DNA of 64,000 nt from Hamiltosporidium tvaerminnensis FI-OER-3-3 (GCA_022605425.2 JAKIMF020000013.1:248001-312000); one strand, 5' to 3'; shown: positions 3,252 to 63,362, numbered from the stretch's first letter. Notes: a model not told the origin generated them from the sequence alone. Numbers and translations: made by a program.

Positions 3252-3427
3252 AAATACAATTTAAAAATATAGAAATATCAATAAAATAACTTACTAATAG
3301 ATATAATAAATCTTTTAATTAAATACAATTTAAATATATAGAAATATCAATAAAATAACTTACTAATAGATATAATAAATCTTTTAATTAAATAAATTAA
3401 AAATCTATAGAAATATCAAAAAAATAA
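3252..3427. repeat. Tandem duplication, ~69-bp unit x2.5, 3' of Sec7 gene
   Basis: aaatacaatttaaa...tcttttaatt at 3252 and 3321, partial third copy at 3391. Confidence 0.9.
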
Positions 3428-3491: not shown

Positions 3492-6400
3492 TTATAAATT
3501 GTAAACCTCATTATCAACACTGTTATTATCATTGTCATCACCTTTAACATCTTTTACTTTGTTATCCTTTACTATATCCTTTACTATATCATTATCCTTT
3601 AGTATATCATTATCCTGTACTATACTATTATCTTTTATTATACTATTATCCTCTACTATACTATCCTTACTCTCACTATCCTTCTTCTTACCATCCACCT
3701 TCTCTTTACCCTCACCTTCTCTTTCCTTACCAATAAATGTAAAACACTCCTTTCCTACCACACCATTACTAACATACACATCAACAACTTCATACACCTC
3801 TTCATACACATCCTTATGCTCTTTATTACACCACTCAACACATACTATCTCTCCATCCATTACCTTACAAACTCTACTACTAAATATCTTACAAATACTC
3901 ATTAAACTATTAGAATTCATATTTTTAAAATATTCTAAATTATTTTTAAATACTCTTAAAAATAAAGGTAAACTACTACTTATTAAATTTACTATCCATA
4001 ACACATATCTACTTAGTTTGGTATTATTTATAGTATCTACCTTATAAAGCATATAACATATTCTTTCTTCTAAGTCAGTAAATAACAGGTCATCAATAGG
4101 ACATAAAGAAGGGGTAATATTTAAAGGGGTGTTATTAACAGTAGTATTATTTAAAGGGGTGTTATTAACAGTACTGTCATTTAAAGGGGTGTTAGTAACA
4201 TTCCTAGTATCATAAGAGGTGTTATTTATAGTACTTGGTTCTATAGTACCACAAAAGGTGTTATTAAAGCTACCTAAATCCTTACTACTTACTGAGGTAG
4301 TGTTATCAATATTACTACTTACTGAGGTAGTACTGTTAATATTACTTAAATCTTTACTACTCTTAGACGTGTTAACACTATCACCTCTTCTCATAAAGTA
4401 CCTTTCTACTACCTTATTGTTCATAACACTGTTACACTTCATAAAAAATAAAAATACATTTCTTATATCTTTAAGACACACATCAAATCTCTCTATAAAA
4501 TACCTTTTATTTTTATAACCCATTATATATGTATAGTTATAATAACACCCCTTTATTACTACATATTTAAACATGTCATATTTGTATTGTAAATTTAAAA
4601 CAAAATTAAAGCAGAGATGTAGATCTGTATTGTTAAAGGGGTGTTGTATATCAGTGTTGTTATTAACAGGGTGTTGTGTATTAGTGTTGTTATTAACGGG
4701 GTGTTGTGTATTAGTACATATATTAACACCCTTTATATTACTACCCCGATCACTAACACCCTGTTGTTCATCAGTAGTATCATTAACACCCTTTATATCA
4801 CTACCCTTATGATTAACACCCTCTTCTTTACCCTTATCATTGACACCCTGTTGTTCATCAGTAGTATCACCAACACCCTTTATATTACTACCCCGATCAC
4901 TAACACCCTCTAACATACTCTTATCTCTAACACCCTCTATATTACTACTCTTATGATTAACACCCTCTAACATACTCTTAGCACTAACACCCTCTACTAC
5001 CCTATCACCCTCTAACATACACTCTTCCACACTACAATATTTAAATATATACCTCTCTATAACATCTATAACACTACTATCAATACATTCTGAATCCTCT
5101 TTAACACACTTATCTAAAACACTAATAACACTAAGTCTCCATTCCTTTATAAATGTACAAAGTACACCTGTTAATCTTAATTCTACTACTTTTTCTATTA
5201 AATAAGACATGTAATTTATATTACCTTTAAATATAATACATACTTCATTTAACACCCCTTTAATTCTAAAACAGTTTCTATCAATAATAAGAAATAAAAA
5301 CCAAAGATAAAAGGTGTTATTTGATAGAAGGATAGAAGGGGTGTTATTTGTATGTTGTGTTGTTAAAGGGGTGTTATTTGCAGTGTTGTTGTTTAAAGGG
5401 TTATAATTATTAGTACTAGTATTAACAGGAGGTAAAGCATTAGTACTAGTATTTAAAGGGTTATAATCATTAGTTACAATATTTAAAGGGTTATAATCAT
5501 TAGTACCAGTATTAAAAGGGTTATAATTATTAGTACTAGTATTAACAGGGTTATAATTATTAGTACCAGCATTAACAGGGTGTAAAGTATTAGTACTATC
5601 ACCCTTATCACTACTATCATTATAAACAATATACTTTATAAGAAGTATATAATACTTATCAGGTAATGAAGATGTTATTCTTATATATTTATTATATACA
5701 TTCTCATATTTAGAAATAAAATGTTCTTTCTTCTTACACTTAGTATAAAGAGTATATAATATATTTAAAGGTAAAGATAGTAAAGTAAGAAGTTGGGAGT
5801 GATTAGTAGTGGTGATATTGGTAGTAGTGTTATTAAAGGGGTGTTGTTCATTAGTAGTGTTATTAAAGGGGTGTTGTTCATCTGTATTATTACTAACACC
5901 CTGTTGTTTATTACTAGTTATGTTAACACCCTGTTGTTTACTATCCATATCACCAACACCCTCTAATACATTATCCATATCACCAACACCCTTTATATTA
6001 CTATCCATATTACTAACACCCTCTAATACATTATCCATATCACCAACACCCTTTATATTACTATCCATATTACTAACACCCTTTATATTACTACCCCTAT
6101 CTCTAACACCCTGTTGTTCATCAGATAGATTGTTAACACCCTTTATATTACTACCCCTATCACTAACACCCTGTTGTTCATCAGATAGATTGCTAAAACC
6201 ACCTACCCCTACACCAATACTATCCCCATACCACTTATCTATATCCTGTACAATCTCTATAAAAATATCAATTATCTCTTCAATCTTAACATCTAAATAT
6301 TTACTAATATATTCTAAATAATATATTAAAGGTTCTATTAAATGTAAATATTTACATATTTCTATATAATAACAAGATATATGATAAGGTATTATAGGTG

Positions 6401-9400
6401 TTATAGATTTATAAGTGTTATTTATAATATAAGTGTAAGAAGATATTATATAGAAAGGACAAAGTGTATAAGATAAGGATATAGGTGTAGTGTTATTTAC
6501 AGTGTTGTTATTTAAAGGGGTGTTATTTATAGTACTTATACTTATAGGGGTGTTATTTATAGGGGTGTTACTATTAGCACTAATAGCTATATGGGTGTTA
6601 TTTACAGTATTGTTATTTATAGGGGTGTTACCAATATCCTTACCAATATCCTTACTTATACTACATTTAGATAGTAGGGTGTTAATATCACTACCTATAG
6701 TTATAGGAGTGTTATTATTAACACTAGTATTATAAAGAGTATTAATACAAGTAAAAGTATTATTTCTATACTTATCATTACTAGTATTACCACTATCCTT
6801 ATCCTTACAGGTATTATTACTATACTTATCATTACTAGTATTATTACTATAGTTATCCTTACTATCCTTATCCTTACTAGTATTATTACTATACTTTTCT
6901 GTACTATACTTATCCTTACTAGTATTATTACTGTAACACCCCCTATTACCATAACACCCTTTACACACCCTAACACTATCCCTACTACTATAATACCCTG
7001 TTAATTCTTTATATACTTCATAGTTACTAACACCCATACAATTACTATCATTAAAAACCAACCCTTTATCTTTAATACTGTTATATAAAGATAATAAATA
7101 TTCATTATTATAATAGGGTGTTATATTACAATTCCTTATACTTTCTATAAAAGATTCTTTTGATATTTTAATTTTAACATTAATGTTATGTAAGTTAGTG
7201 TTAAGCATTATTATAGCATATGATAGTATATATATATCATGTAGAGTAAAGGGTGTAGTATTGTTATTGTTAGTAGGGGTAGTAGGGTGTAATTTACTAT
7301 CCTTATCGGTAACAGGGTGTTGTTCACTAGTACTGTTACTAAGAGGGTGTTGTTCACTAGTACTGTTACTAAGAGGGTGTTGTTTCACATCCTTGTTACT
7401 AACAGGGTGTAATTTACTATCCTGATCTTTATCACCCTCTAACATATCACTCTTATCACCCTTTAACACATCACTATTATCACCCTCTAATTCCTTATCC
7501 AATCCTATTTCTACCTTGTTATCCTCATAATACTTACTAGAGAATGCTTCTAACACACGTATAACCTTTTGACTTTCACCAGGCATAACAAAAGAAAAAA
7601 GAACTTTTCTTATACAACTAAGTATATCATAACCATGAAATACAAAAGTAGACATAAAAACTTTCAATGCTTCTAAATTACCTTCACCAGATATATAATT
7701 ACCTAAAACTTTTAAATCTGTTATATACGAATACCTTAGAAATAAAAAAGTCTCTTTTTTTATACTTAAATTTGCTTTTTCTAATGAACATGTCTTATTA
7801 AAAATATGTATTTTTAATAAAAAGTTATTCTTGTTATTTGTAAGTAAATGTATATTTGTATAGTGGAGTGAGATATTATTAGTAGTATGATTAACAGGGT
7901 GTTGTTTATTTAGATTGGTGTTAACAGGGTTTAAGGTATTAGTACTATAGTTAACAGGGGGTTGTTCATTAGTACAGTGGTTTAAAGGGTGTTGTTCATT
8001 AGTACAGTGGTTTAAAGGGTGTTGTTCATTAGTACAGTGGTTTAAAGGGTGTTGTTCATCTGTACAGTGGTTAACAGGGTTTTGTTCATTATTAATATCA
8101 ATAACAGGGTGTTGTTTATTATCCTTATAGTTAACAGGGTGTTGTTCCTTATTACTATCAATAACAGGGTGTAAAGTATTATTACTATCAATAACAGGGT
8201 GTTGTTCCTTATCCTTATAGTTAACAGGGTGTTGTTCCTTATCCTTATAGTTAACAGGGTGTTGTTTATTATCCTTATAGTTAACACCCCCAATCATATT
8301 ATTATTACCCTCCACCATACTACTATCATTAACACCCCCTACATACATACTACTATCATTAACACCCCCTACATACATATAACCACCACTACACCTTCTA
8401 TACCCCTCCTTAATATCATTTATTACTCTAACAAATGTATCAATAGTATTATTACTTATATCATTAATAAATACATCAAAACATATATTTTTAAATAAAT
8501 AATTTAAATCAAAATATAATAAAATAAAAGGATATAAATTAACAGGTAATAAACAATTACTTATTAATATATTGTTATATAATAAGTAAGTATTTAAAGG
8601 TGTTAAATAAGATAATAAGTAATTAGAAATAGAATCATTGTTATAGAAATAAAGCTTAACACAGTGAATATCAGAAATAGTATTAGTGAGGTTGTTATAT
8701 ATTATTCTGTTATTATCTATATTACCAATATAATTATTATTATATCTATTACTAATATAATTATTATCTATATATCTATTGCTAATATAATAATTATTAT
8801 TATTATCTATATATCTATTACTATGATTATCTATATCTCTATTACTAATATTATCATATCCACTGTATCTATTGTCATATCCACTATATCTATTATCATA
8901 TCCACTATACCCATATACCATACTACTTATTATACTGCTTAGGTATGGATATCCTATATATAAATTATTATCTATAAACATATTAAAATAAAAAGGTATT
9001 ATTTTAATAAATAAATTATTAATTTGTAATAAAAGTATTTTTTTAACGATTTTTTCTTTTAAAAAAAAATAAAATTTAAAAAAAATATCTTTTTGTAAAG
9101 AAGGTGTTATTTTTGTAGTAAATAATGTATATAAAGTTTTAAAGTATATGTATAGTGTTAATTCTACATCTTTATCAAAACGTGATATTTTAAGAGTAAG
9201 AATAAGAGGGGTAAGAGTAGAAAGGAAAGTATTATTATTTGATTGGTTGTTATTAGGGGTGTGTTGGTATGGGTGGTTGTTATTAGTAATAGTATTGATA
9301 GTAGTATTGATTGTAGTATTATTAGTAACAGTATTGATAGTATAAGGGTTATTAGTATAAGGGTTATTAGTATAAGGGTTACTATAAGGGTCATTAGTAA

Positions 9401-9782
9401 TAGTATTATTAGTATAGTTATTAGTATAGTTATTACTATAAGGGTTGTTAGTATAAGGGTTGATATCTATTCTACTACTATCACCATCCCTACTACCCTC
9501 ACTTTCCATATCCCTACTATTAGCATCAATATTATTATAGTATTTAGTTGTTACTGTTCGTTTTATGTATGGTATTCTGTTTATATATTCATTTAATAAT
9601 GTAAGTATCTGTGTAATATCTTCATTATTATATTTCTTAATACTAATAAGATTTATAAATGTATTGTTAAGTGATGTGTTGGTAGGTGGAAATGTGAGTT
9701 GTTTTATTATTTTATTTATTTCTTTGTTTTGAGAGGTTGATAGTGTTAGAAGGTGGATGTGTGTGTTAATGAGGTGTGGCAT
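3492..9782 (-). CDS. Sec7-domain Arf guanine-nucleotide exchange factor (large ArfGEF) with many in-frame repeat insertions
   Basis: 2096-aa ORF with Sec7 motifs FVMPGESQKVIRVLEAFS (glutamate finger) and YILSYAIIMLNTNLHN; ccc motif 6-8 nt upstream of the ATG. Confidence 0.9.
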   Translation of the reverse strand: MPHLINTHIHLLTLSTSQNKEINKIIKQLTFPPTNTSLNNTFINLISIKKYNNEDITQILTLLNEYINRIPYIKRTVTTKYYNNIDANSRDMESEGSRDGDSSRIDINPYTNNPYSNNYTNNYTNNTITNDPYSNPYTNNPYTNNPYTINTVTNNTTINTTINTITNNNHPYQHTPNNNQSNNNTFLSTLTPLILTLKISRFDKDVELTLYIYFKTLYTLFTTKITPSLQKDIFFKFYFFLKEKIVKKILLLQINNLFIKIIPFYFNMFIDNNLYIGYPYLSSIISSMVYGYSGYDNRYSGYDNRYSGYDNISNRDIDNHSNRYIDNNNNYYISNRYIDNNYISNRYNNNYIGNIDNNRIIYNNLTNTISDIHCVKLYFYNNDSISNYLLSYLTPLNTYLLYNNILISNCLLPVNLYPFILLYFDLNYLFKNICFDVFINDISNNTIDTFVRVINDIKEGYRRCSGGYMYVGGVNDSSMYVGGVNDSSMVEGNNNMIGGVNYKDNKQHPVNYKDKEQHPVNYKDKEQHPVIDSNNTLHPVIDSNKEQHPVNYKDNKQHPVIDINNEQNPVNHCTDEQHPLNHCTNEQHPLNHCTNEQHPLNHCTNEQPPVNYSTNTLNPVNTNLNKQHPVNHTTNNISLHYTNIHLLTNNKNNFLLKIHIFNKTCSLEKANLSIKKETFLFLRYSYITDLKVLGNYISGEGNLEALKVFMSTFVFHGYDILSCIRKVLFSFVMPGESQKVIRVLEAFSSKYYEDNKVEIGLDKELEGDNSDVLKGDKSDMLEGDKDQDSKLHPVSNKDVKQHPLSNSTSEQHPLSNSTSEQHPVTDKDSKLHPTTPTNNNNTTPFTLHDIYILSYAIIMLNTNLHNINVKIKISKESFIESIRNCNITPYYNNEYLLSLYNSIKDKGLVFNDSNCMGVSNYEVYKELTGYYSSRDSVRVCKGCYGNRGCYSNNTSKDKYSTEKYSNNTSKDKDSKDNYSNNTSNDKYSNNTCKDKDSGNTSNDKYRNNTFTCINTLYNTSVNNNTPITIGSDINTLLSKCSISKDIGKDIGNTPINNNTVNNTHIAISANSNTPINNTPISISTINNTPLNNNTVNNTTPISLSYTLCPFYIISSYTYIINNTYKSITPIIPYHISCYYIEICKYLHLIEPLIYYLEYISKYLDVKIEEIIDIFIEIVQDIDKWYGDSIGVGVGGFSNLSDEQQGVSDRGSNIKGVNNLSDEQQGVRDRGSNIKGVSNMDSNIKGVGDMDNVLEGVSNMDSNIKGVGDMDNVLEGVGDMDSKQQGVNITSNKQQGVSNNTDEQHPFNNTTNEQHPFNNTTTNITTTNHSQLLTLLSLPLNILYTLYTKCKKKEHFISKYENVYNKYIRITSSLPDKYYILLIKYIVYNDSSDKGDSTNTLHPVNAGTNNYNPVNTSTNNYNPFNTGTNDYNPLNIVTNDYNPLNTSTNALPPVNTSTNNYNPLNNNTANNTPLTTQHTNNTPSILLSNNTFYLWFLFLIIDRNCFRIKGVLNEVCIIFKGNINYMSYLIEKVVELRLTGVLCTFIKEWRLSVISVLDKCVKEDSECIDSSVIDVIERYIFKYCSVEECMLEGDRVVEGVSAKSMLEGVNHKSSNIEGVRDKSMLEGVSDRGSNIKGVGDTTDEQQGVNDKGKEEGVNHKGSDIKGVNDTTDEQQGVSDRGSNIKGVNICTNTQHPVNNNTNTQHPVNNNTDIQHPFNNTDLHLCFNFVLNLQYKYDMFKYVVIKGCYYNYTYIMGYKNKRYFIERFDVCLKDIRNVFLFFMKCNSVMNNKVVERYFMRRGDSVNTSKSSKDLSNINSTTSVSSNIDNTTSVSSKDLGSFNNTFCGTIEPSTINNTSYDTRNVTNTPLNDSTVNNTPLNNTTVNNTPLNITPSLCPIDDLLFTDLEERICYMLYKVDTINNTKLSRYVLWIVNLISSSLPLFLRVFKNNLEYFKNMNSNSLMSICKIFSSRVCKVMDGEIVCVEWCNKEHKDVYEEVYEVVDVYVSNGVVGKECFTFIGKEREGEGKEKVDGKKKDSESKDSIVEDNSIIKDNSIVQDNDILKDNDIVKDIVKDNKVKDVKGDDNDNNSVDNEVYNL
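4105..9465. repeat. Intragenic minisatellite arrays (mostly 30-bp units; core AACA-GGG-TGTT / AACA-CCC-TGTT) encoding QHPVN, QQGVN, LEGV and NTPL repeats
   Basis: Arrays at ~4105-4330, 4625-5015, 5335-5610, 5810-6210, 6485-6960, 7250-7500, 7885-8380 and 9250-9465; unit lengths are multiples of 3. Confidence 0.9.
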
Positions 9783-10003
9783 TGTATGGGTTATTAAATA
9801 GAAAATAGAAATAAATAGAAAAATATTATAGTATTAGTAGGGGTTAGAAGGTAGATGTGTGTGTTAATGAGGTGTATCATACAATGGGTTATTAAATTGA
9901 AAATAGAAATATTATAATAGGGGTTAGAAGGTAGATGTGTGTGTTAATGAGGTGTGGCATTGTATGGGTTATTAAATAGAAAATAGAAATTAGAAATATT
10001 ATA
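9745..10003. repeat. Triplication of the Sec7 gene start region (80-98-bp units)
   Basis: gttagaaggt(g/a)gatgtgtgtgttaatgaggtgt at 9745, 9843 and 9923. Confidence 0.9.
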
Positions 10004-10094
10004 GTAGTGGTGTAGTATTAGTATATATAGTAGTGGTGTAGTGGTATTATATTATTAGTGTTACTATGCAGTAATAGTTATTTAGTAATTTAGT

Positions 10095-11840
10095 GATGAT
10101 CTTAATTCCTTGCAAAAGACAGTTCCACACTGAATGCAATGACAGACGAGGCAAAGGAATTTTTAGAGGTGATTGGCTTAGAGATTAAAAAAGAGAAATC
10201 AGCCAAAAATGATGCGTGTTGTGAAGATACTGCTACTCTTCTAAAGGTGTTAGTGTTTACAAATATTTAGGAATAATAGAAAATAGCAGAGGAATCCCAA
10301 CACGTAGCTCATTTGAAGAAGTACAGAGCAAACTTATATCAAGAGGAGCAAGACTTTGTCACACAAGATTAAATGCAAAAAATTTATTTTCTGCTATTAA
10401 TCAACATGCGATATCGTTAATCAACTATCACATAGGAGTACTTCGACTTTAACCGGCGTACTTCTCTAAGTTAGATGATGCAGTGCGTGCGGTGTTAGTG
10501 TAGAATAAGATACATCTCCGCCCAGGATGTAAAGAGCGTTTGTATCTTCCTAGAACAGAACTTGGAAGAGGCCTACATAGTGTTGAGTTGCGAAGCGAAC
10601 ATATGCTTCTGCAAATCTTGGATTGTCTGGAAAAATGTAAAGAAATATCAACTAGACGAGCAGCAATCCTCAAGATGGAGAATAATAATAAAACCCAACT
10701 TGCACTAATAAAAGGCTTCTTGAATGTAAAGTACAGGTTGGTAGAAGAAGTCACTAAGAAAAGTTTAGAAGAAGCCCAACTTGCAAAAATATTAAAAGAA
10801 ATAGAAAAACGAAAACTCCATTCAAAGTTATATAATGCAAGAAAAAATGAGCTTGTGAGTTTTAGTGACTTTTCTAGATGGCTAAAGAAAGGGAATATTA
10901 AGACGCAATCAAGCAGTGTTCTGCTATATCCGGGATAGAAATGTATTCTGGGAAGCAGATAGTGTGTGTCAACATTGCAAGAAGTCTGGCAAGACTGTAG
11001 ATCATCTAGCAACTCGATGTTAAAAAATGCCAGGCCATGATTACATTAGACGGCATAATGAAATGGTTAGATGCTTACACTTACTCTTCTTAAATAGATA
11101 TAAGTTTAAGCTCTCAAAACGAATTAGGAGTCACTCGGTTCAAGAAATTCTTGATAATGAGTATGCGGAGATAAGAGTGGACACCAGAATAAAAACTGAT
11201 GTTAAAATTCGGAATAACAGACCCGACATATTTATTTTAGATAAGAAAAAGAATAAGATAACACTCATTGAAATAGGAATCACTTCCCAAGATTCATTTC
11301 AAATAGTTGAAACTGAAAAACTTAGGAAGTATGACCTGCTAGCCAATGAGTTGGGTCTTATTTATAAGTGTAGTGTTGAGATAATTCCTTATGTGATGAC
11401 CTGGGACGGTATTGTGACAAAATACTATAAATCTCATCTTAAAAGACTAGAAATACCCATGAATGTAGAAGCATACATTCAGTCTATAGTACTTAAGAAA
11501 ACAGTCGAAAAAATTTCCTTTGATCGACGAAGAGGACTTGACTCAGGACTAAAATCCGAAGGGAGCTGAGAGAGAGGGTCAATAGGTGTTATTATGAGAG
11601 CAGAGATGCATGAGGAACCAACACCCCCTTTAAAAGAAGAGAAGAGAGAGGAAGATGGTGCAAAAAATTTTAAACCAAAAAATAAAGCACCTTTTATTTC
11701 ACAAGGAGAACCACTTTAGAGGAACCGACCAATAACATAAATGAAGACTCTGATTTGGAAGAAGAAACAATTGTGGTAAAAGAGGTAGAAGAAAATGCAT
11801 TAAAACCGTAAAACTACTTTACCCAGAATTTTATTAAATA
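10095..11840 (+). mobile_element. 5'-truncated, disrupted RLE-type non-LTR retrotransposon (R4/Dong-like)
   Basis: Fragments: DDL (RT motif), YKYLGI, AINQHA, RLYLPRTELGRGL, Cys/His knuckle, RRHN, RPDIFILD...LIEIGIT (PD-(D/E)xK endonuclease); stops and frameshifts; ends acccagaattttattaaata. Confidence 0.9.
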
Positions 11841-11954: not shown

Positions 11955-12680
11955 TTTATTTAAAAGTATCACATCTTTTTAAAATAGTGGCAAGTGTTAT
12001 ATTTGTTTTCATGACATTAACGCTGTTCTAGGTTTAACATAAATAACTGCTACCCCAAAACTCCATCAGTACCCCCTAAGATACCTACATCCTAAAGTCT
12101 TTCATCTACCAGGTGTGTAGAACCTAATTAATAGGCGAGGTAGTTGCCCGGAGTTCGTTAATGTCCATTGCATGGAGTGTTTGAAGGCCGAAACCCCCCC
12201 CTGGGATCCCCCAAGACTATGCAGCATTCCCACTTACTCTACACTTTCTGAACCCAATAAACTTCTAGCTAAGATATATTTCAGAGACTAACATGGGGTC
12301 CACCTAGACAGTGCAATATCATACCAACAGGTATAACCCGCTACTTAGCTCTCCCGGCTTTAAATGGTTTTTATTTTTATATCTCTCAGGCGCTAAGTCT
12401 TCTAACCTGAGTGAGCAAGGCTAGGTTTCCATGCTTTTACATGGCAATTACCTAAATGTTCAGCTGCGGTCTGCAATCTGGTTACATAAAAAACTACAAA
12501 TAACTTTGTAGAAAAAGTTTCTCCGTTTCTTAGACCTCTCCTCCTCATAATAAATCCCATGGAACAACCAAAGATGTAGTGTGGTTGTATTCCCACCAAA
12601 AATCCAAACAATGACCTCACACCAGTTTCACACACTCATTGCCAAGCAGAAAGTTTTTTATGTGGTTATCCTCCCTCCAC
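11955..12680 (-). mobile_element. ~725-bp dispersed structured element, copy A
   Basis: High identity to 30061-30779 (inverted) and 32838-33554; GC content well above background. Strand assigned from G-U-compatible stems and tetraloops. Confidence 0.9.
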
Positions 12681-60266: not shown

Positions 60267-62603
60267 ATGACAGATCCATCAGAAGAACTACAATCTTTAT
60301 TCTATAATTTTCTTACAACTGAACCATATAAAACCAAAATCAAATCCATACTCCTTCACAATCTTCCTTTAGATATACACACTGTACCAGTATCTCTAAC
60401 TGACATACAATTTTATAGCAGTGATCTTTATTCACTTATTGTCCAAACATTCTCTGCCACATCCACACTTCTAATTTCTACATTCAATACTATTTTTAAT
60501 AACAGTACTGATATAAAACTCATACCTTTGTTCGTTAATAATCCGTTTATTCATAGAATGAGACATCTCAGATCAATTTTACTTTCAAAACTTACTTCTT
60601 TCAGCGGAACAGTTACACGAGTTTCTCAAGTGAGACCAGAACTTTCAGTAGGGTGCTTTGTGTGTAAGGCATGTAATGCTACAATTCAAGATGTTCAGCA
60701 ATATTCTTATTACACACTTCCTTCTACATGTCCCAACCATCTGTGTACAAATAGGAAAGCTTTTTCCTTAGAAACTTCCAAATGTATTTTTTTAAATTGG
60801 CAAAAAGTCACCGTACAAGAAGATACTCATCAAACACCACCAGGTACACTTCCACGTAATATTGAGGTCATTCTTCGTAACCATCTAATAGAAAGTGTTA
60901 AACCGGGAGACAAAGCTACATTTACAGGTACACTTACTGTAGTGCCAGAGCAACCAGGATTTATACATACAACTATACAACCAACTCTTAGTGGAATTAC
61001 TGATAACGAAAAGAAAAATAGAAATATCAAAGAAATAAATTACAGACTTTCTTTTGTTGGAGAATCAGTTGAAATACAAAACGAACAAAAAAATAATTTT
61101 ATGAATTCTGATGAAAATAGAAAAAACGAATCAATTTTTAACGAAGAAAATTTTTCAAATTCGATATTAAAAAATTCTTTGAATGATAAAAATCGAACAA
61201 ATAATTTTACTAATTATGAGTTGGGTATCATTTCGCATATAAAAAATTCTCCTGATTTATATAATCGGATGTCTGATTCTCTTTTTCCTTCGATACATGG
61301 ACATTCTTCTATAAAGAAAGCCATTCTTCTTTTGTTGGTTGGTGGTACTTCTAAGGTTGTAAGTGGTGGTAGATTGAGAGGAGATATTAATATTTTACTG
61401 GTTGGTGATCCGGGTACGGCAAAAAGTCAATTTTTAAAACAGTGTTCCACTTTGGTATCTCGTGGTGTTTATACATCAGGGAAAGGATCGAGTGCGGCTG
61501 GATTGACTGCGAGTGTGGTTCGAGATATTGAATCTGGAGATTTCACTATCGAACCAGGTGCTCTTATGTTGGCAGATACCGGTGTCTGTTGTATCGATGA
61601 ATTCGACAAAATGAATTATAAAGATCAAGTATCTATTCACGAAGCCATGGAACAGCAAACGATTACTATCAATAAAGGTGGTATAAATGCCACGTTAAAC
61701 TCTCGAACAAGTGTCCTTGCAGCTTGTAATCCTGTACACGGCAGATACGATAAAAAAAAGAGTCTCAGACAAAATATCAACATGAGTGCTCCAATTATGA
61801 GTAGATTTGATCTTTATTTTGTATTAATTGATAATGTAAATTATGAAGCAGACAAAGAAATAGCAGAATATATTTTAAGAAACCATTATGAAGCTGTCAA
61901 GGATATAAATTCTAAGAATTTTGAAGAAAATGAATTTTTAGAAAAACAAAGTATCAATACTACAGATTACGAGGAAAACACAAAAAATAATAAAAAAACT
62001 TTTTCAAATTTTTTGGTTAAAGAAAATCTTTTTGATTTAGAAAGTGTAAAATTATATTTAAAATATGTACGAGGATTAGAAGTTGTAATGGAAGAAAATG
62101 TTAAAGAAATTTTAGTAAAAAAATATGTAAAACTTAGAATGGACAGTTTAGTGCATTCAAACAATTATAGAATGACAGTTCGTGTTTTAGAAAGTTTAAT
62201 ACGTTTAAGTGAAGCCTTGTCCAAGTTACATGGAGATGTGAGTGTAAAAGAATGTTATGTAGAAGAAGCTTATAGATTGGTAATGAGTTCTGTTGTAGAA
62301 GTTAAAGGAGAAGATTTAATTGTAGAAAAAGAAGATGGAAATGTTTTTAGAGTTAAAGATAGTGATTATATGAGAGTTGTTAGTGTTTTGGTTGGTATTT
62401 TAAAAATGAGAGAAGGTTGTAAGAAAGAAGAGTTGGTTGAGTTGTATTTAGAAGAAATTGAAAATTGTATTGGTGATGAGGGTGGGTTTTATAGGGAGAA
62501 GAGTGTTGTTGAGGAGGTTATATGTTATTTGGTAGAGAAAGAAGGGGTTTTGTATGAGGAAGGGGGTATTATTTTTATACATCCTAATTATGATGTGTGG
62601 TAA
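60267..62603 (+). CDS. MCM6: DNA replication licensing factor MCM6
   Basis: Zn finger CKAC..CPNHLC, PPGTLPRNIEVILR, Walker A GDPGTAKSQ, YTSGKGSSAAGLTA, IDEFDKM, SRFD and C-terminal HPNY typical of Mcm6. Confidence 0.93.
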   Translation: MTDPSEELQSLFYNFLTTEPYKTKIKSILLHNLPLDIHTVPVSLTDIQFYSSDLYSLIVQTFSATSTLLISTFNTIFNNSTDIKLIPLFVNNPFIHRMRHLRSILLSKLTSFSGTVTRVSQVRPELSVGCFVCKACNATIQDVQQYSYYTLPSTCPNHLCTNRKAFSLETSKCIFLNWQKVTVQEDTHQTPPGTLPRNIEVILRNHLIESVKPGDKATFTGTLTVVPEQPGFIHTTIQPTLSGITDNEKKNRNIKEINYRLSFVGESVEIQNEQKNNFMNSDENRKNESIFNEENFSNSILKNSLNDKNRTNNFTNYELGIISHIKNSPDLYNRMSDSLFPSIHGHSSIKKAILLLLVGGTSKVVSGGRLRGDINILLVGDPGTAKSQFLKQCSTLVSRGVYTSGKGSSAAGLTASVVRDIESGDFTIEPGALMLADTGVCCIDEFDKMNYKDQVSIHEAMEQQTITINKGGINATLNSRTSVLAACNPVHGRYDKKKSLRQNINMSAPIMSRFDLYFVLIDNVNYEADKEIAEYILRNHYEAVKDINSKNFEENEFLEKQSINTTDYEENTKNNKKTFSNFLVKENLFDLESVKLYLKYVRGLEVVMEENVKEILVKKYVKLRMDSLVHSNNYRMTVRVLESLIRLSEALSKLHGDVSVKECYVEEAYRLVMSSVVEVKGEDLIVEKEDGNVFRVKDSDYMRVVSVLVGILKMREGCKKEELVELYLEEIENCIGDEGGFYREKSVVEEVICYLVEKEGVLYEEGGIIFIHPNYDVW

Positions 62604-62968
62604 GTAAAATAAGGGGTATAGTTTTTATCAGGAAGGGGGTGTTTTTAATGTAAATTTTATTATGATGTGTGGTAAGTAAAATAAGGGGTATAGTTTTTAT
62701 CAGGAAGGGGGTGTTTTTAAAGTAAATTTTATTATGATGTGTGGTAAGTAAAATAAGGGGTATTAGTATTGCTTAGTGAAGTGGTAAGAAGTGTTTTTAA
62801 AGTAAATTTTATTATGATGTGTGGTAAGTAAAATAAGGGGTATTAGTATTGCTTAGTGAAGTGGTAAGAAGTGTTTTTAAAGTAAATTTTATTATGATGT
62901 GTGGTAAGTAAAATAAGAGGTATTAGTATTGCTTAGTGAAGTGGTAAGAAGTGTTTTTAAAGTAAATT
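62588..62968. repeat. Five tandem copies (72, 72, 80, 80-bp spacing) of the MCM6 last codons, stop and 3' flank
   Basis: tgatgtgtggtaagtaaaataag at 62591, 62663, 62735, 62815 and 62895. Confidence 0.95.
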
Positions 62969-63045: not shown

Positions 63046-63218
63046 ATTATGTTTAAATATATTTTTAAGAATAATAAAAATATTGGTTGTTTTATTTTGA
63101 TATATAAATAAGAATAATAGAAAGTTTGAGATTATGTTTAAATATATTTTTAAGAATAATAAAAATATTGGTTGTTTTATTTTGATATATAAATAAGAAT
63201 AATAGAAAGTTTGAGATT
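63046..63218. repeat. Tandem duplication, 85-bp unit
   Basis: attatgtttaaatatatttttaagaata at 63046 and 63131. Confidence 0.92.
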
Positions 63219-63362
63219 AGAGTTATATTTATAAGAAATGAAGCAATTGTTATATTACTTGAAATATAAGCTGCTGTATTTATTGGTTTTTTATTTTAAA
63301 AATTTTAGTGAATTTTGATTACTAGGTATAGTATATATAGTCTGAAGAATAGGTAATATTTT

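Follow-up and report, generated by a model that had tools for sequence, protein, structure and literature searches.

The Sec7 gene and its inserts

Hamiltosporidium tvaerminnensis is a microsporidian parasite of Daphnia. The window analysed here (the whole stretch of 64,000 nucleotides) holds a Sec7-domain gene with eight in-frame repeat inserts (Table 1). Its sense frame runs for 2096 codons with 0 stops, whereas the other two sense frames contain 177 and 544. Positions 33-181 of the Sec7 profile are stretched across 232 residues. A Pfam search over the whole protein returned Sec7 only, with no intein or other domain. Reading the inserts as an intein or as spliceosomal introns was rejected on the basis of this search, their nature as in-frame repeats, and the published Iso-Seq-based annotation, which lists only 98 introns with a mean length of 28 bp. 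The Sec7 gene of the other strain starts at window residue 710, reaches the C-terminus and is ~95% identical where aligned; the main difference between the strains is the number of in-frame units. Array periods within the gene are 30, 60, 90, 27, 15 and 45 bp.

Table 1. Coordinates of the Sec7 gene, its inserts and the compared MCM-like gene in the window
Feature	Position	Strand	Description
Sec7-domain gene	3492..9782	-	ORF, 2096 codons; carries all inserts
C-terminal insert	4100..4420	-	30/60-bp G-type units; gradual switch ~4330, under step threshold
Insert E	4606..5020	-	One 30-bp array; G-type 4606-4718, C-type 4719-5020 (+ strand); switch ~4726, step score 51, classed G|C; sense IKGVNIC then TNTQHPV
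Insert D	5310..5625	-	Long G-type array on + strand (sense NYNP units), very short C side; switch ~5598, not sharp by step score
Insert C	5795..6215	-	30/60/90-bp array; switch 5891, score 54; sense KQQGVSNN then TDEQHPF
Insert 6470-7000	6470..7000	-	15/45-bp G-type and 27/42-bp C-type units; switch diffuse, about 6640-6760
Sec7 domain	7065..7760	-	Residues 675-906, split by insert B; Pfam PF01369, E 1.2e-32
Insert B	7245..7495	-	Within Sec7 domain; switch 7415-7425, score 45; unit number varies between strains
Insert A	7875..8400	-	13.6 G-type units (+ strand), then C-type units; switch 8282-8286, score 41
N-terminal insert	9200..9530	-	12/15/27-bp units (sense NPY type); switch ~9459-9465, score 41
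CCC box	9788..9790	-	6-8 nt upstream of Sec7 ATG (GGG on + strand); opens sense C-rich 5' region 9783-10100
MCM-like gene	60267..62603	+	No arrays; bias as gene-long ramp, sense skew -0.6 to +0.9

Array structure and the two-state core

Each insert is a single tandem array, mostly of 30 bp per unit, whose register is unbroken while AACA-GGG-TGTT gives way to AACA-CCC-TGTT. When the + strand is written in rows of 30 nt, the arrays at 4606-5020, 5795-6215, 7245-7495 and 7875-8400 hold one register across the switch, and the same columns pass from ...aaCaGGGtGtt... or ...aaaGGGGtGtt... to ...aaCaCCCt(G/t/C)tt.... The original prediction had described such arrays from individual strings, all of which were recovered where it had placed them, and its protein reading is right: along the minus-strand Sec7 ORF, QQGV, LEGV or IKGV units precede QHPV, LHPV or QHPF units. 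It had also listed eight switches. Five of them are sharp (4726, 5891, 7415, 8286 and 9459; step scores 41-54), while the other three, at ~4330, 5595 and 6700, either change gradually or have a C side that is very short.

In the sense direction, the units share a flank with the consensus AAT AAT AGT ACT AAT AAA CAA CA. This flank leads into a core that reads ..CA-GGG-TGTT (QQGV) in the 5' part of the array and ..CA-CCC-T(G/T/C)TT (QHP[VFL]) in the 3' part, and the units are specific for sense and frame: NNSTNKQQGV, then NNSTNKQHPF. The window contains 13 copies of the motif AACASSSTGTT, where 0.01 would be expected, all of them within the Sec7 gene, and AACAGGGTGTT has 347+376 copies in the genome against 1-2 for a reversed control. 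The 22-nt flank and the decapeptides recur, on either strand, in 15 or more unrelated genes, and a second dispersed in-frame unit family is also present.

The core changes as a block. Of 742 AACA-SSS-TGTT cores, 723 (97%) are GGG or CCC and only 19 are mixed, which suggests that the 3-nt spacer inverts in concert. At L004 4660-5091, opposite cores lie in units that match at 26-27 of 27 flank bases, with at most one mismatch, at an end base. The two halves are not reverse complements of each other: in the four sharpest inserts, reverse-complement alignment of the halves scores about at background, whereas direct alignment with G and C swapped scores well above it. One half is often much longer than the other, and array regularity is highest beside the switch. 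Loop micro-inversion, which had been listed as an alternative to damage at breaks, accounts best for the core change; by itself it does not explain the order of the two states.

The arrays keep the reading frame. Of the 118 arrays within long ORFs, 115 have a period divisible by 3, versus 47 of 92 outside, and the window differs from the other strain (L001) by 13 indels, all multiples of 3. IKI3 differs between H. tvaerminnensis and H. magnivora by whole units. All inserts are common to these two species and are therefore old. C/G differences account for 6 of 118 substitutions between the two strains; strain differences are mostly A/G in the G halves, and A/C and C/T in the C halves. Judged from sequence, the inserts may be coding minisatellites, that is, in-frame arrays of 10-codon units spread through long Hamiltosporidium core genes and read as protein, a reading that we adopt tentatively.

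Polarity across the genome

The 264-kb sample is made up of the window and a further 200 kb of genome picked by core-motif matches. Within arrays, 22 run G-then-C and 0 run C-then-G (binomial p 5e-7), and twelve further Hamiltosporidium proteins contain 27 sharp GV-to-HP steps and 0 sharp HP-to-GV steps. The predicted polarity is thus real and seen across the genome, with a nearly constant order. Long ORFs, on both strands, hold 33 of the 38 sharp switches, and almost all of these read as a GV/GD-type run followed by an HP/NP-type run. Because G-then-C is its own reverse complement, the polarity is silent on the strand of the gene. Across the step, base composition passes from 28% G and 5% C to 7% G and 25% C, and A/T content is flat.

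The two kinds of turn differ in width. The gap at G-to-C turns has a median of 27 nt (n=51) versus 219 nt at C-to-G turns (n=43; Mann-Whitney p 3e-11), so that the G-to-C step is one unit wide and the C-to-G return is broad and lies in non-repeat sequence. In Sec7, the C-to-G turns at 4095, 4578, 5305, 5775, 6298 and 8432 are all broad and fall within non-repeat blocks. The original statement that all switches share one polarity needs rewording: since G-to-C and C-to-G turns must alternate, the shared sign is partly forced, and what stands is that the former are sharp and inside arrays whereas the latter are broad and between them. Genome-wide, core adjacency at 30 bp gives 113 G-to-C versus 49 C-to-G matches, and inspection of the listed places puts most of the latter in interleaved higher-order arrays, where the G-then-C order is not absolute. 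The insert at 6470-7000 is built from a unit family other than AACA-SSS-TGTT, yet it keeps the G-then-C order; generality to unrelated arrays is seen in a few cases only, namely this insert, the one at 9200-9530 and the MCM ramp.

A saw-tooth skew in conserved sequence

The strand asymmetry extends beyond the repeats. Almost all non-repeat blocks of Sec7 begin with a C bias on the sense strand and end with a G bias. Among two-fold codons, R-ending ones carry G in 12 of 111 cases in the first halves of blocks versus 42 of 127 in the second halves, and Y-ending codons carry C in 37 of 183 versus 12 of 193 (p about 5e-5 for each). The flanks of arrays in 35 ORFs have the same C-to-G sense bias, with a position-3 skew of -0.17, 0.09 and 0.29 by thirds; these flanks may contain decayed units, to which the Sec7-domain blocks are less open. 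The asymmetry predicted around the switches is thus regional, acts at the nucleotide level and extends, on either side of the switch, to synonymous sites in conserved sequence. The skew is therefore a saw-tooth that resets at each insert, with at least eight resets in the Sec7 gene, one per insert.

The skew also carries on beyond the stop and start codons. A CCC box lies upstream of both the Sec7 and the MCM ATG, and GGGGTGTT-type motifs directly follow the stop codon of the MCM-like gene. A CCC-like promoter motif has been described in microsporidia (PMC2803860).

Likeness to known systems

Genes of unicellular fungi show a 5'-C/3'-G intragenic GC skew (McLean-Tirosh), also at synonymous sites and in UTRs and with a uniform AT skew; it affects amino-acid choice, extends into flanks and is stronger in AT-rich genomes (PMC3315797). 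The bias described here is alike in its C-biased start and G-biased end, synonymous sites, amino-acid choice, flanks and uniform AT skew. The fungal skew, however, is a single ramp along each gene, without repeats, whereas here every in-frame insert resets it, the drop spans one unit and the skew reaches 0.6-0.9, so that Sec7 departs from a single monotonic ramp. The fungal study neither describes intragenic resets nor offers an established mechanism (PMC3315797), and a word search of its text for 'microsporidi' and 'Encephalitozoon' found neither.

The inserts themselves have several partial counterparts. Proteins of Plasmodium falciparum contain low-complexity inserts, for which we know of no G-then-C order. 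These and the inserts of Hamiltosporidium MCM proteins are like those of Sec7 in that Asn-rich, in-frame low-complexity tracts of strain-variable length split housekeeping domains in an AT-rich parasite genome. For the MCM proteins, the available part of Haag et al. 2020 (PMC6944219) gives one clear case of in-frame Asn-rich expansion, does not tell inteins and expansions apart, and mentions neither polarity, unit family nor skew. Human minisatellites of the MS32/CEB1 type, which are mostly non-coding, likewise consist of units tens of bp long that vary in number, and their variant maps depend on position in the array. Their polarity concerns where units are gained and is ascribed to a flanking recombination hotspot; here it is instead a switch of G/C state in the centre of the array. 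In Rickettsia, palindromic elements occur as single copies, each forming a stable hairpin. Like these and other in-frame selfish inserts, the arrays are dispersed short elements tolerated in frame in unrelated essential genes, but they stand in tandem, in direct register and without special folding.

For the change of the core, spacer inversion through template switching has been documented in coding DNA (PMC8604942). As in such quasipalindromes, the multinucleotide change is the reverse complement of a spacer between short inverted arms, recurs and lies in coding DNA: at L004 4660-5091, either GGG or CCC stands between AACA and TGTT with essentially untouched flanks. Break-repair synthesis stimulates such quasipalindrome changes. 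Here, by contrast, the arms are only 4 bp long, the same site recurs in hundreds of copies and its two states occupy different parts of the array. Resection-linked clusters of the kataegis type are somatic or experimental, and mainly consist of single-base C>T and C>G changes. They share with the arrays C changes on one side and G changes on the other, with the sign of 5'->3' resection. The arrays instead show block flips, rare C/G differences between strains and no A/T shift; a single-base C>T/C>G spectrum was not found in the strain substitutions, the bimodal cores or the flat A/T profile.

Origin of the order

The original prediction took each switch for a recurrent double-strand-break site, at which 5'->3' resection bares the top strand to the left and the bottom strand to the right, cytosines on these tails are damaged, abasic-site bypass converts C to G and repair expands the repeats. 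Resection geometry does give the sign observed, and the model is strand-symmetric, as are the data. It would also suit the homogeneity of arrays beside the switch, the one UDG and one Y-family polymerase that the genome retains, and a synonymous-site bias that extends over a few hundred nt of conserved sequence, a distance similar in scale to known resection tracts. Unit gain and loss, identical units dispersed in unrelated genes, and quasipalindrome changes are hallmark errors of break-repair synthesis, whose known error signature, in the accessible part of one preprint, comprises slippage of units, template switching to ectopic sites and changes at quasipalindromes (Sugawara et al. 2023). 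Base-by-base conversion of C to G, however, finds no support in cores that are almost without intermediates, in clean 3-nt flips in otherwise near-identical units, or in the low share of C/G among strain substitutions. There is almost no reciprocal A/T shift, and C>T deamination is therefore not the driver; central homogeneity is equally expected from ordinary unequal exchange in any tandem array. We regard this model as unlikely, while break repair is a live candidate for the array dynamics. Somewhat less probable still is a founder cassette, in which many genes received sense-oriented copies of one ancestral GV-then-HP block, through ectopic conversion or as a mobile, in-frame-tolerated element, so that order was inherited and only unit numbers changed later. 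The flank and decapeptides shared among unrelated genes on both strands, the 723 core copies, the second dispersed unit family and the age of the inserts would all agree with copying. Copying leaves the synonymous-site saw-tooth and the array-free MCM ramp unexplained, though, and the order is kept by inserts of unrelated units (6470-7000 and 9200-9530); neither terminal repeats, target duplications nor presence/absence polymorphism were seen in the strain and species comparisons.

Two further mechanisms start from the complementarity of the cores or from telomeric sequence. Telomerase could have healed intragenic breaks by extending both ends with its G strand, 6 nt at a time and hence in frame, before the ends were joined and the head-to-head tracts decayed and were re-amplified as 30-bp units. 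Extension of 3' ends only would force the G-then-C polarity, and literal (TTAGGG)2-4 tracts, almost all with the C strand in sense, occur as short tracts within several inserts. The two G-strand tracts examined adjoin the switch on its 5' side, TTAGGG/CCCTAA repeats meet head to head at two junctions (L008 4730-4790 and L009 3263-3310), and among the GGG contexts of the 264-kb sample TTA-GGG-TTA ranks fourth in frequency. Against this, the arrays at large and the skewed tracts lack 6-nt periodicity and show only 30/60 and 27/57, the halves are in direct register rather than inverted, AAC CCT is merely Asn-Pro and expandable by slippage, and the bias in conserved blocks would go unexplained. 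We consider telomerase healing very improbable. We give the lowest credence of all to a selfish or functional palindromic element whose G and C halves pair in mRNA (or DNA) and loop the insert out under selection for pairing, as had also been suggested. The G-type and C-type cores are perfect 11-nt complements, but for two inserts the predicted folding of the sense RNA does not surpass that of shuffled sequence (z -1.8 and -1.5), the halves often differ greatly in length and align at background as reverse complements, and reversing the order would leave a hairpin just as workable. A palindromic in-frame mobile element of the RPE/MITE type was rejected on the same fold and alignment scores, which give no stable hairpin.

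Our best explanation as a whole, which we put forward with some reserve, combines coding minisatellites, a block flip of the core and an outward nucleotide bias. The core would flip as a block when polymerase template switching inverts the 3-nt spacer that the AACA and TGTT arms enclose, and unit number would shift by slippage or unequal exchange. The order would be set by a strand-symmetric, nucleotide-level bias directed outward from every insert centre and, as limited evidence suggests, from intergenic spacers as well. Immediately downstream of such a point the sense strand would then favour C, and immediately upstream of the next it would favour G, and the bias, extreme in this genome of 26% G+C and reset at every insert, would produce the saw-tooth. 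Flipped cores are assumed to be sorted by position through fixation or mutation bias.

Biological meaning

This outward bias is probably the same process as the skew at fungal gene ends. Its proximate cause may be a transcription- or open-chromatin-linked asymmetry that spreads outward from promoter-like islands, which is a possibility we hold loosely; an asymmetry tied to break, resection and repair is more doubtful, and some other cause is doubtful to a like degree. Because the bias points away from the centres of inserts as it may do from the spacers between genes, the inserts look like 'intergenic-like' islands within genes. By this analogy, the 5' half of an insert resembles the one gene 3' end examined, where GGGGTGTT follows the MCM stop codon, and the 3' half resembles the microsporidian CCC promoter box.

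Repeat arrays of the Sec7 gene

Hamiltosporidium tvaerminnensis is a microsporidian that parasitises Daphnia magna (PMC10542269), with a genome of 21.64 Mb in 17 contigs. The Sec7 gene in the window is interrupted by large in-frame inserts, each with a switch at which G-type repeat units become C-type. A Pfam search of the protein places the Sec7 domain at residues 675-906, spread across 232 residues. Its nearest database relative, Sec7 from a different H. tvaerminnensis isolate (~95% identity where aligned), is set apart from it mainly by whole repeat units. Set out on the plus strand in 30-nt rows, the stretches 4606-5020, 5795-6215, 7245-7495, and 7875-8400 are each a single unbroken tandem array. 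The unit left of the switch reads ..aaCaGGGtGtt.. or ..aaaGGGGtGtt.., and the same columns to the right read ..aaCaCCCt(G/t/C)tt... Tandem Repeats Finder returned array periods of 30, 60, 90, 27, 15, and 45. The core of the unit, AACA-SSS-TGTT, has a GGG (QQGV type) or CCC (QHP type) spacer; the window holds 13 copies, all within the Sec7 gene, where 0.01 would be expected.

The original prediction listed eight switches of the same polarity. With a step detector, sharp G-to-C steps emerge at 4726, 5891, 7415, 8286, and 9459, while the changes near 4330, 5595, and 6700 are each either gradual or one-sided; the protein reading of QQGV or LEGV followed by QHPV or LHPV is correct on translation. 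G-to-C and C-to-G turns must alternate, which partly forces the shared polarity, so that it is informative only in that the G-to-C turns are sharp and lie within arrays, with the C-to-G turns in non-repeat blocks. A G-then-C order is also its own reverse complement, and the polarity is thus uninformative on gene orientation. A bisulfite-like or assembly artefact is ruled out, since the ORF is intact and both H. magnivora and an independently assembled second strain carry the same arrays.

Selection keeps the inserts in frame. No stops interrupt the sense frame of the Sec7 ORF, compared with 177 and 544 in the other two sense frames; the array period is divisible by three in 115/118 arrays inside long ORFs versus 47/92 outside; and all 13 indels between two strains are multiples of three. 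The Iso-Seq-based genome annotation for H. tvaerminnensis contains 98 introns with a mean of 28 bp. In L008, one of the 10-kb loci fetched around genome matches of the core, two long ORFs in different frames (4864-6657 and 6900-9536) apparently belong to one gene; the pair is broken within a G-then-C array (6515-7171), either by a true frameshift or by an assembly error in the repeat.

Coordinates of the main features (positions in the window unless a fetched 10-kb locus, L, is named)
Feature	Position	Strand	Remarks
Sec7 ORF	3492..9782	minus	2096 codons; single open frame holding all the listed switches
MCM-like gene	60267-62603		without tandem arrays
~69-bp unit family	L002 3870-4090, 5310-5620; L004 8700-8870; L008 2860-2900, 4760-4800; L009 3290-3440		
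Interleaved higher-order array	L004 4660-5091 (G000:C1:557660-558091)		90-bp period

Generality of the polarity

Twenty 10-kb loci (200 kb), picked by genome matches to the core motif, formed an additional sample, which was supplemented by whole-genome pattern counts and by proteins of other assemblies. With arrays defined after merging G and C into one letter, 22 arrays in the twenty loci switch G-then-C and none C-then-G (p = 5e-7). When runs of at least three G or C serve as transition markers, with three markers per kind needed on each side, the median gap is 27 nt, or one unit, for G-to-C transitions (n = 51) versus 219 nt for C-to-G (n = 43; p = 3e-11). Across the mean step, G falls from 28% to 7% and C rises from 5% to 25%, with A and T unaltered. 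Cores spaced 30 bp apart in the whole genome give 113 G-to-C, 49 C-to-G, and 369 same-type pattern hits, and most C-to-G hits in the listed places that were inspected fall within interleaved higher-order arrays. The predicted excess of G-then-C is therefore strong genome-wide but not absolute, and "always" does not hold, since the interleaved arrays break the order. Among twelve further Hamiltosporidium proteins from other assemblies, located by means of their repeats, sharp GV-to-HP steps (10 residues) number 27 and sharp HP-to-GV steps are absent; both kinds are missing from three fungal Sec7 proteins. A comparison of IKI3 between H. tvaerminnensis and H. magnivora found no young or absent insert, every insert being common to both.

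Unit anatomy and core flips

Sharp switches lie in long ORFs, on either strand, in 33 of 38 cases, and in the sense reading almost all of these proceed from a GV/GD-type decapeptide run to an HP/NP-type run. The sense consensus beside the switch changes from AAT AAT AGT ACT AAT AAA CAA CAG GGT GTT to AAT AAT AGT ACT AAT AAA CAA CAC CCC TTT; the shared flank indicates that both halves are one unit in direct orientation. That the C half arose by reverse-complementing the G half, in a large palindrome or inverted duplication, is ruled out by the direct register, the flanks, and the alignment scores. Outside the core, G and C stand at 18/7% in the last G unit and at 10/14, 7/23, and 4/24% in the next three, with A and T constant across the same four units. 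Whole-unit C or G content is flat over ~200 nt either side, which rules out a purity gradient of whole units, and non-core bases are intermediate only in the first one to three post-switch units. Identity between neighbouring units peaks beside the switch and falls off outward on both sides, as expected of any tandem-array centre and also of a growth zone.

Independent G>C hits would predict many intermediate cores. Genome-wide, the 742 AACA-SSS-TGTT sites comprise 723 with a pure GGG or CCC core and 19 mixed ones. The interleaved array of L004 departs from the clean polarity and provides the strongest evidence of block-wise core flips: its GGG or CCC cores sit on units that differ at no more than one end base among 27 flank bases. 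GGG-core and CCC-core units alternate there on near-identical flanks, with two CCG intermediates. Because AACAGGGTGTT is the reverse complement of AACACCCTGTT, inverting the 3-nt spacer that separates the arms AACA and TGTT would produce this core change, in agreement with the loop micro-inversion offered originally as an alternative. Spacer inversion by template switching is documented in yeast coding DNA (PMC8604942), and a preprint by Sugawara et al. states that break-repair synthesis greatly stimulates quasipalindrome changes.

A second dispersed in-frame unit family, of ~69 bp, joins 2-4 literal telomere repeats, CCCTAA in sense, to a following ATAAATGCATAAACA. Its 25 copies occupy ~12 interstitial loci, and chromosome ends lack it; the companion motif of these telomere-like units is interstitial, and subtelomeric copies were not found. 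At L008 4730-4790 and L009 3263-3310, TTAGGGTTAGG, a short spacer, and CTAACCCTA... form head-to-head junctions of telomere repeats exactly at in-gene G-to-C switches.

Strand bias outside the repeats

Nearly all non-repeat Sec7 blocks, both halves of the Sec7 domain included, pass from C-biased to G-biased in sense at every codon position. Over ten blocks, two-fold purine-ending codons end in G in 12/111 cases in first halves versus 42/127 in second halves, and pyrimidine-ending codons end in C in 37/183 versus 12/193 (p ~5e-5 for each). The gene thus follows a saw-tooth, in which the sense skew climbs through each block and falls within one unit at the insert centre. In 35 long ORFs, non-array codons up to 150 nt upstream of G-type arrays have G 0.36 and C 0.09, and those downstream of C-type arrays have G 0.17 and C 0.26. 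Along the MCM-like gene, sense GC skew climbs from -0.6 to +0.9 at every codon position; the encoded protein is rich in L/T/S/P/H at the N-terminus and in E/V/G/K at the C-terminus. Elsewhere in the window, 11955-12680 reaches 0.40-0.46 G+C versus 26% for the window.

At the gene level, these genes resemble in sign and properties the 5'-C/3'-G bias along genes of unicellular fungi, which is also present at four-fold sites and UTRs, has a uniform AT skew, is stronger at low G+C, and has been proposed to stem from Pol II phase-specific mutation or CTP economy (PMC3315797). That published description does not include resets at inserts. Microsporidian genes have a CCC box directly upstream of the ATG (PMC2803860), and such boxes lie 6-12 nt upstream of the start codons of Sec7 (9783-9800) and the MCM-like gene (60240-60266); GGGGTGTT-type motifs, GGGG(G)TGTT, lie within 50 nt past the MCM stop codon. 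From these motifs, the 3' half of an insert appears to resemble a sense promoter-box array, while the 5' half recalls the MCM gene end or antisense promoter boxes. Taken whole, the insert resembles an in-frame intergenic spacer. Non-coding tandem duplications are present at gene boundaries at 9838-9990 and 3252-3427 (periods 80 and 69), 62547-62968, and 63046-63234; one strand of these duplications is G-only or C-only, extending the skew of the adjacent gene end.

Candidate mechanisms

Only inherently 5'→3' processes that act symmetrically from a point yield a polarity identical to its own reverse complement; resection, 3'-end extension, divergent transcription, and bidirectional synthesis qualify as candidates. 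Since all units lie in sense, a process linked to the sense strand is a further possibility. The original prediction favoured recurrent breaks, with strand-specific C damage during resection, C>G rewriting, and repair-driven expansion. Sign and scale come out as this model predicts, and unit slippage, the dispersal of identical units among genes, and the core flips would likewise follow from break-repair synthesis. Its chemistry, however, is not supported: the cores are bimodal, A and T show no shift, and only 6/118 differences in a small, unpolarised comparison of two strains are C/G, most being A/G in G halves and A/C and C/T in C halves. Retention of a single UDG and a single Y-family polymerase in the genome has little bearing on the model either way. 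Replication-origin skew was set aside by reasoning, its usual sign being opposite and the switch spacing of a few hundred bp too dense.

Telomerase healing of both break ends, a minor rival, would force both polarity and frame, and literal telomere tracts and the two head-to-head junctions are found inside inserts; the main arrays, however, stand in direct register and have no 6-nt periodicity, which tells against a telomerase origin for them. Pairing of G and C halves in mRNA, as in a selfish palindromic element, received no support from the folding of two inserts and was dropped. A founder cassette spreading a ready-made G-then-C block accounts for units common to many genes but leaves unexplained the synonymous-site saw-tooth and the same order in unrelated unit families. 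Weighing these models together favours coding minisatellites with a two-state core that template switching would flip; the flipped cores would then be sorted, and the inserts flanked, by the strand-symmetric pressure acting on the ends of fungal genes, with every insert behaving as an intergenic-like island. As proximate cause of this pressure, transcription or open chromatin is the leading but tentative possibility, with break, resection, and repair, and likewise some other cause, each somewhat less likely.

Implications

The C-to-G ramp of fungal genes and the in-frame expansions of Hamiltosporidium were already known separately, both unexplained. Here the two are joined: at the centre of every insert the ramp resets inside a single 30-bp unit, visibly so at synonymous sites of a conserved domain. 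A single ramp per gene cannot separate transcription phase, open chromatin, and break repair as causes of skew; because the ramp resets at each insert, there are many internal reference points per gene by which to separate them. The several hundred copies of the two-state palindromic core form a natural array for rates and direction of template-switch inversion. Hamiltosporidium is a parasite thought to experience weak purifying selection, and the locus shows how extensively nucleotide-level pressure can rewrite its essential proteins, into Gly-Val runs versus His-Pro runs. It is conceivable, if improbable, that the G-to-C switches at insert centres and in intergenic spacers are recurrent start sites of a 5'→3' DNA transaction, with break resection and error-prone repair synthesis as the candidate. 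If so, insert polarity and the long-unexplained fungal skew would be one phenomenon, the inserts would be self-propagating fragile sites in essential genes, with template-switching repair both seeding and spreading them, and the genome sequence alone would map historical break sites.
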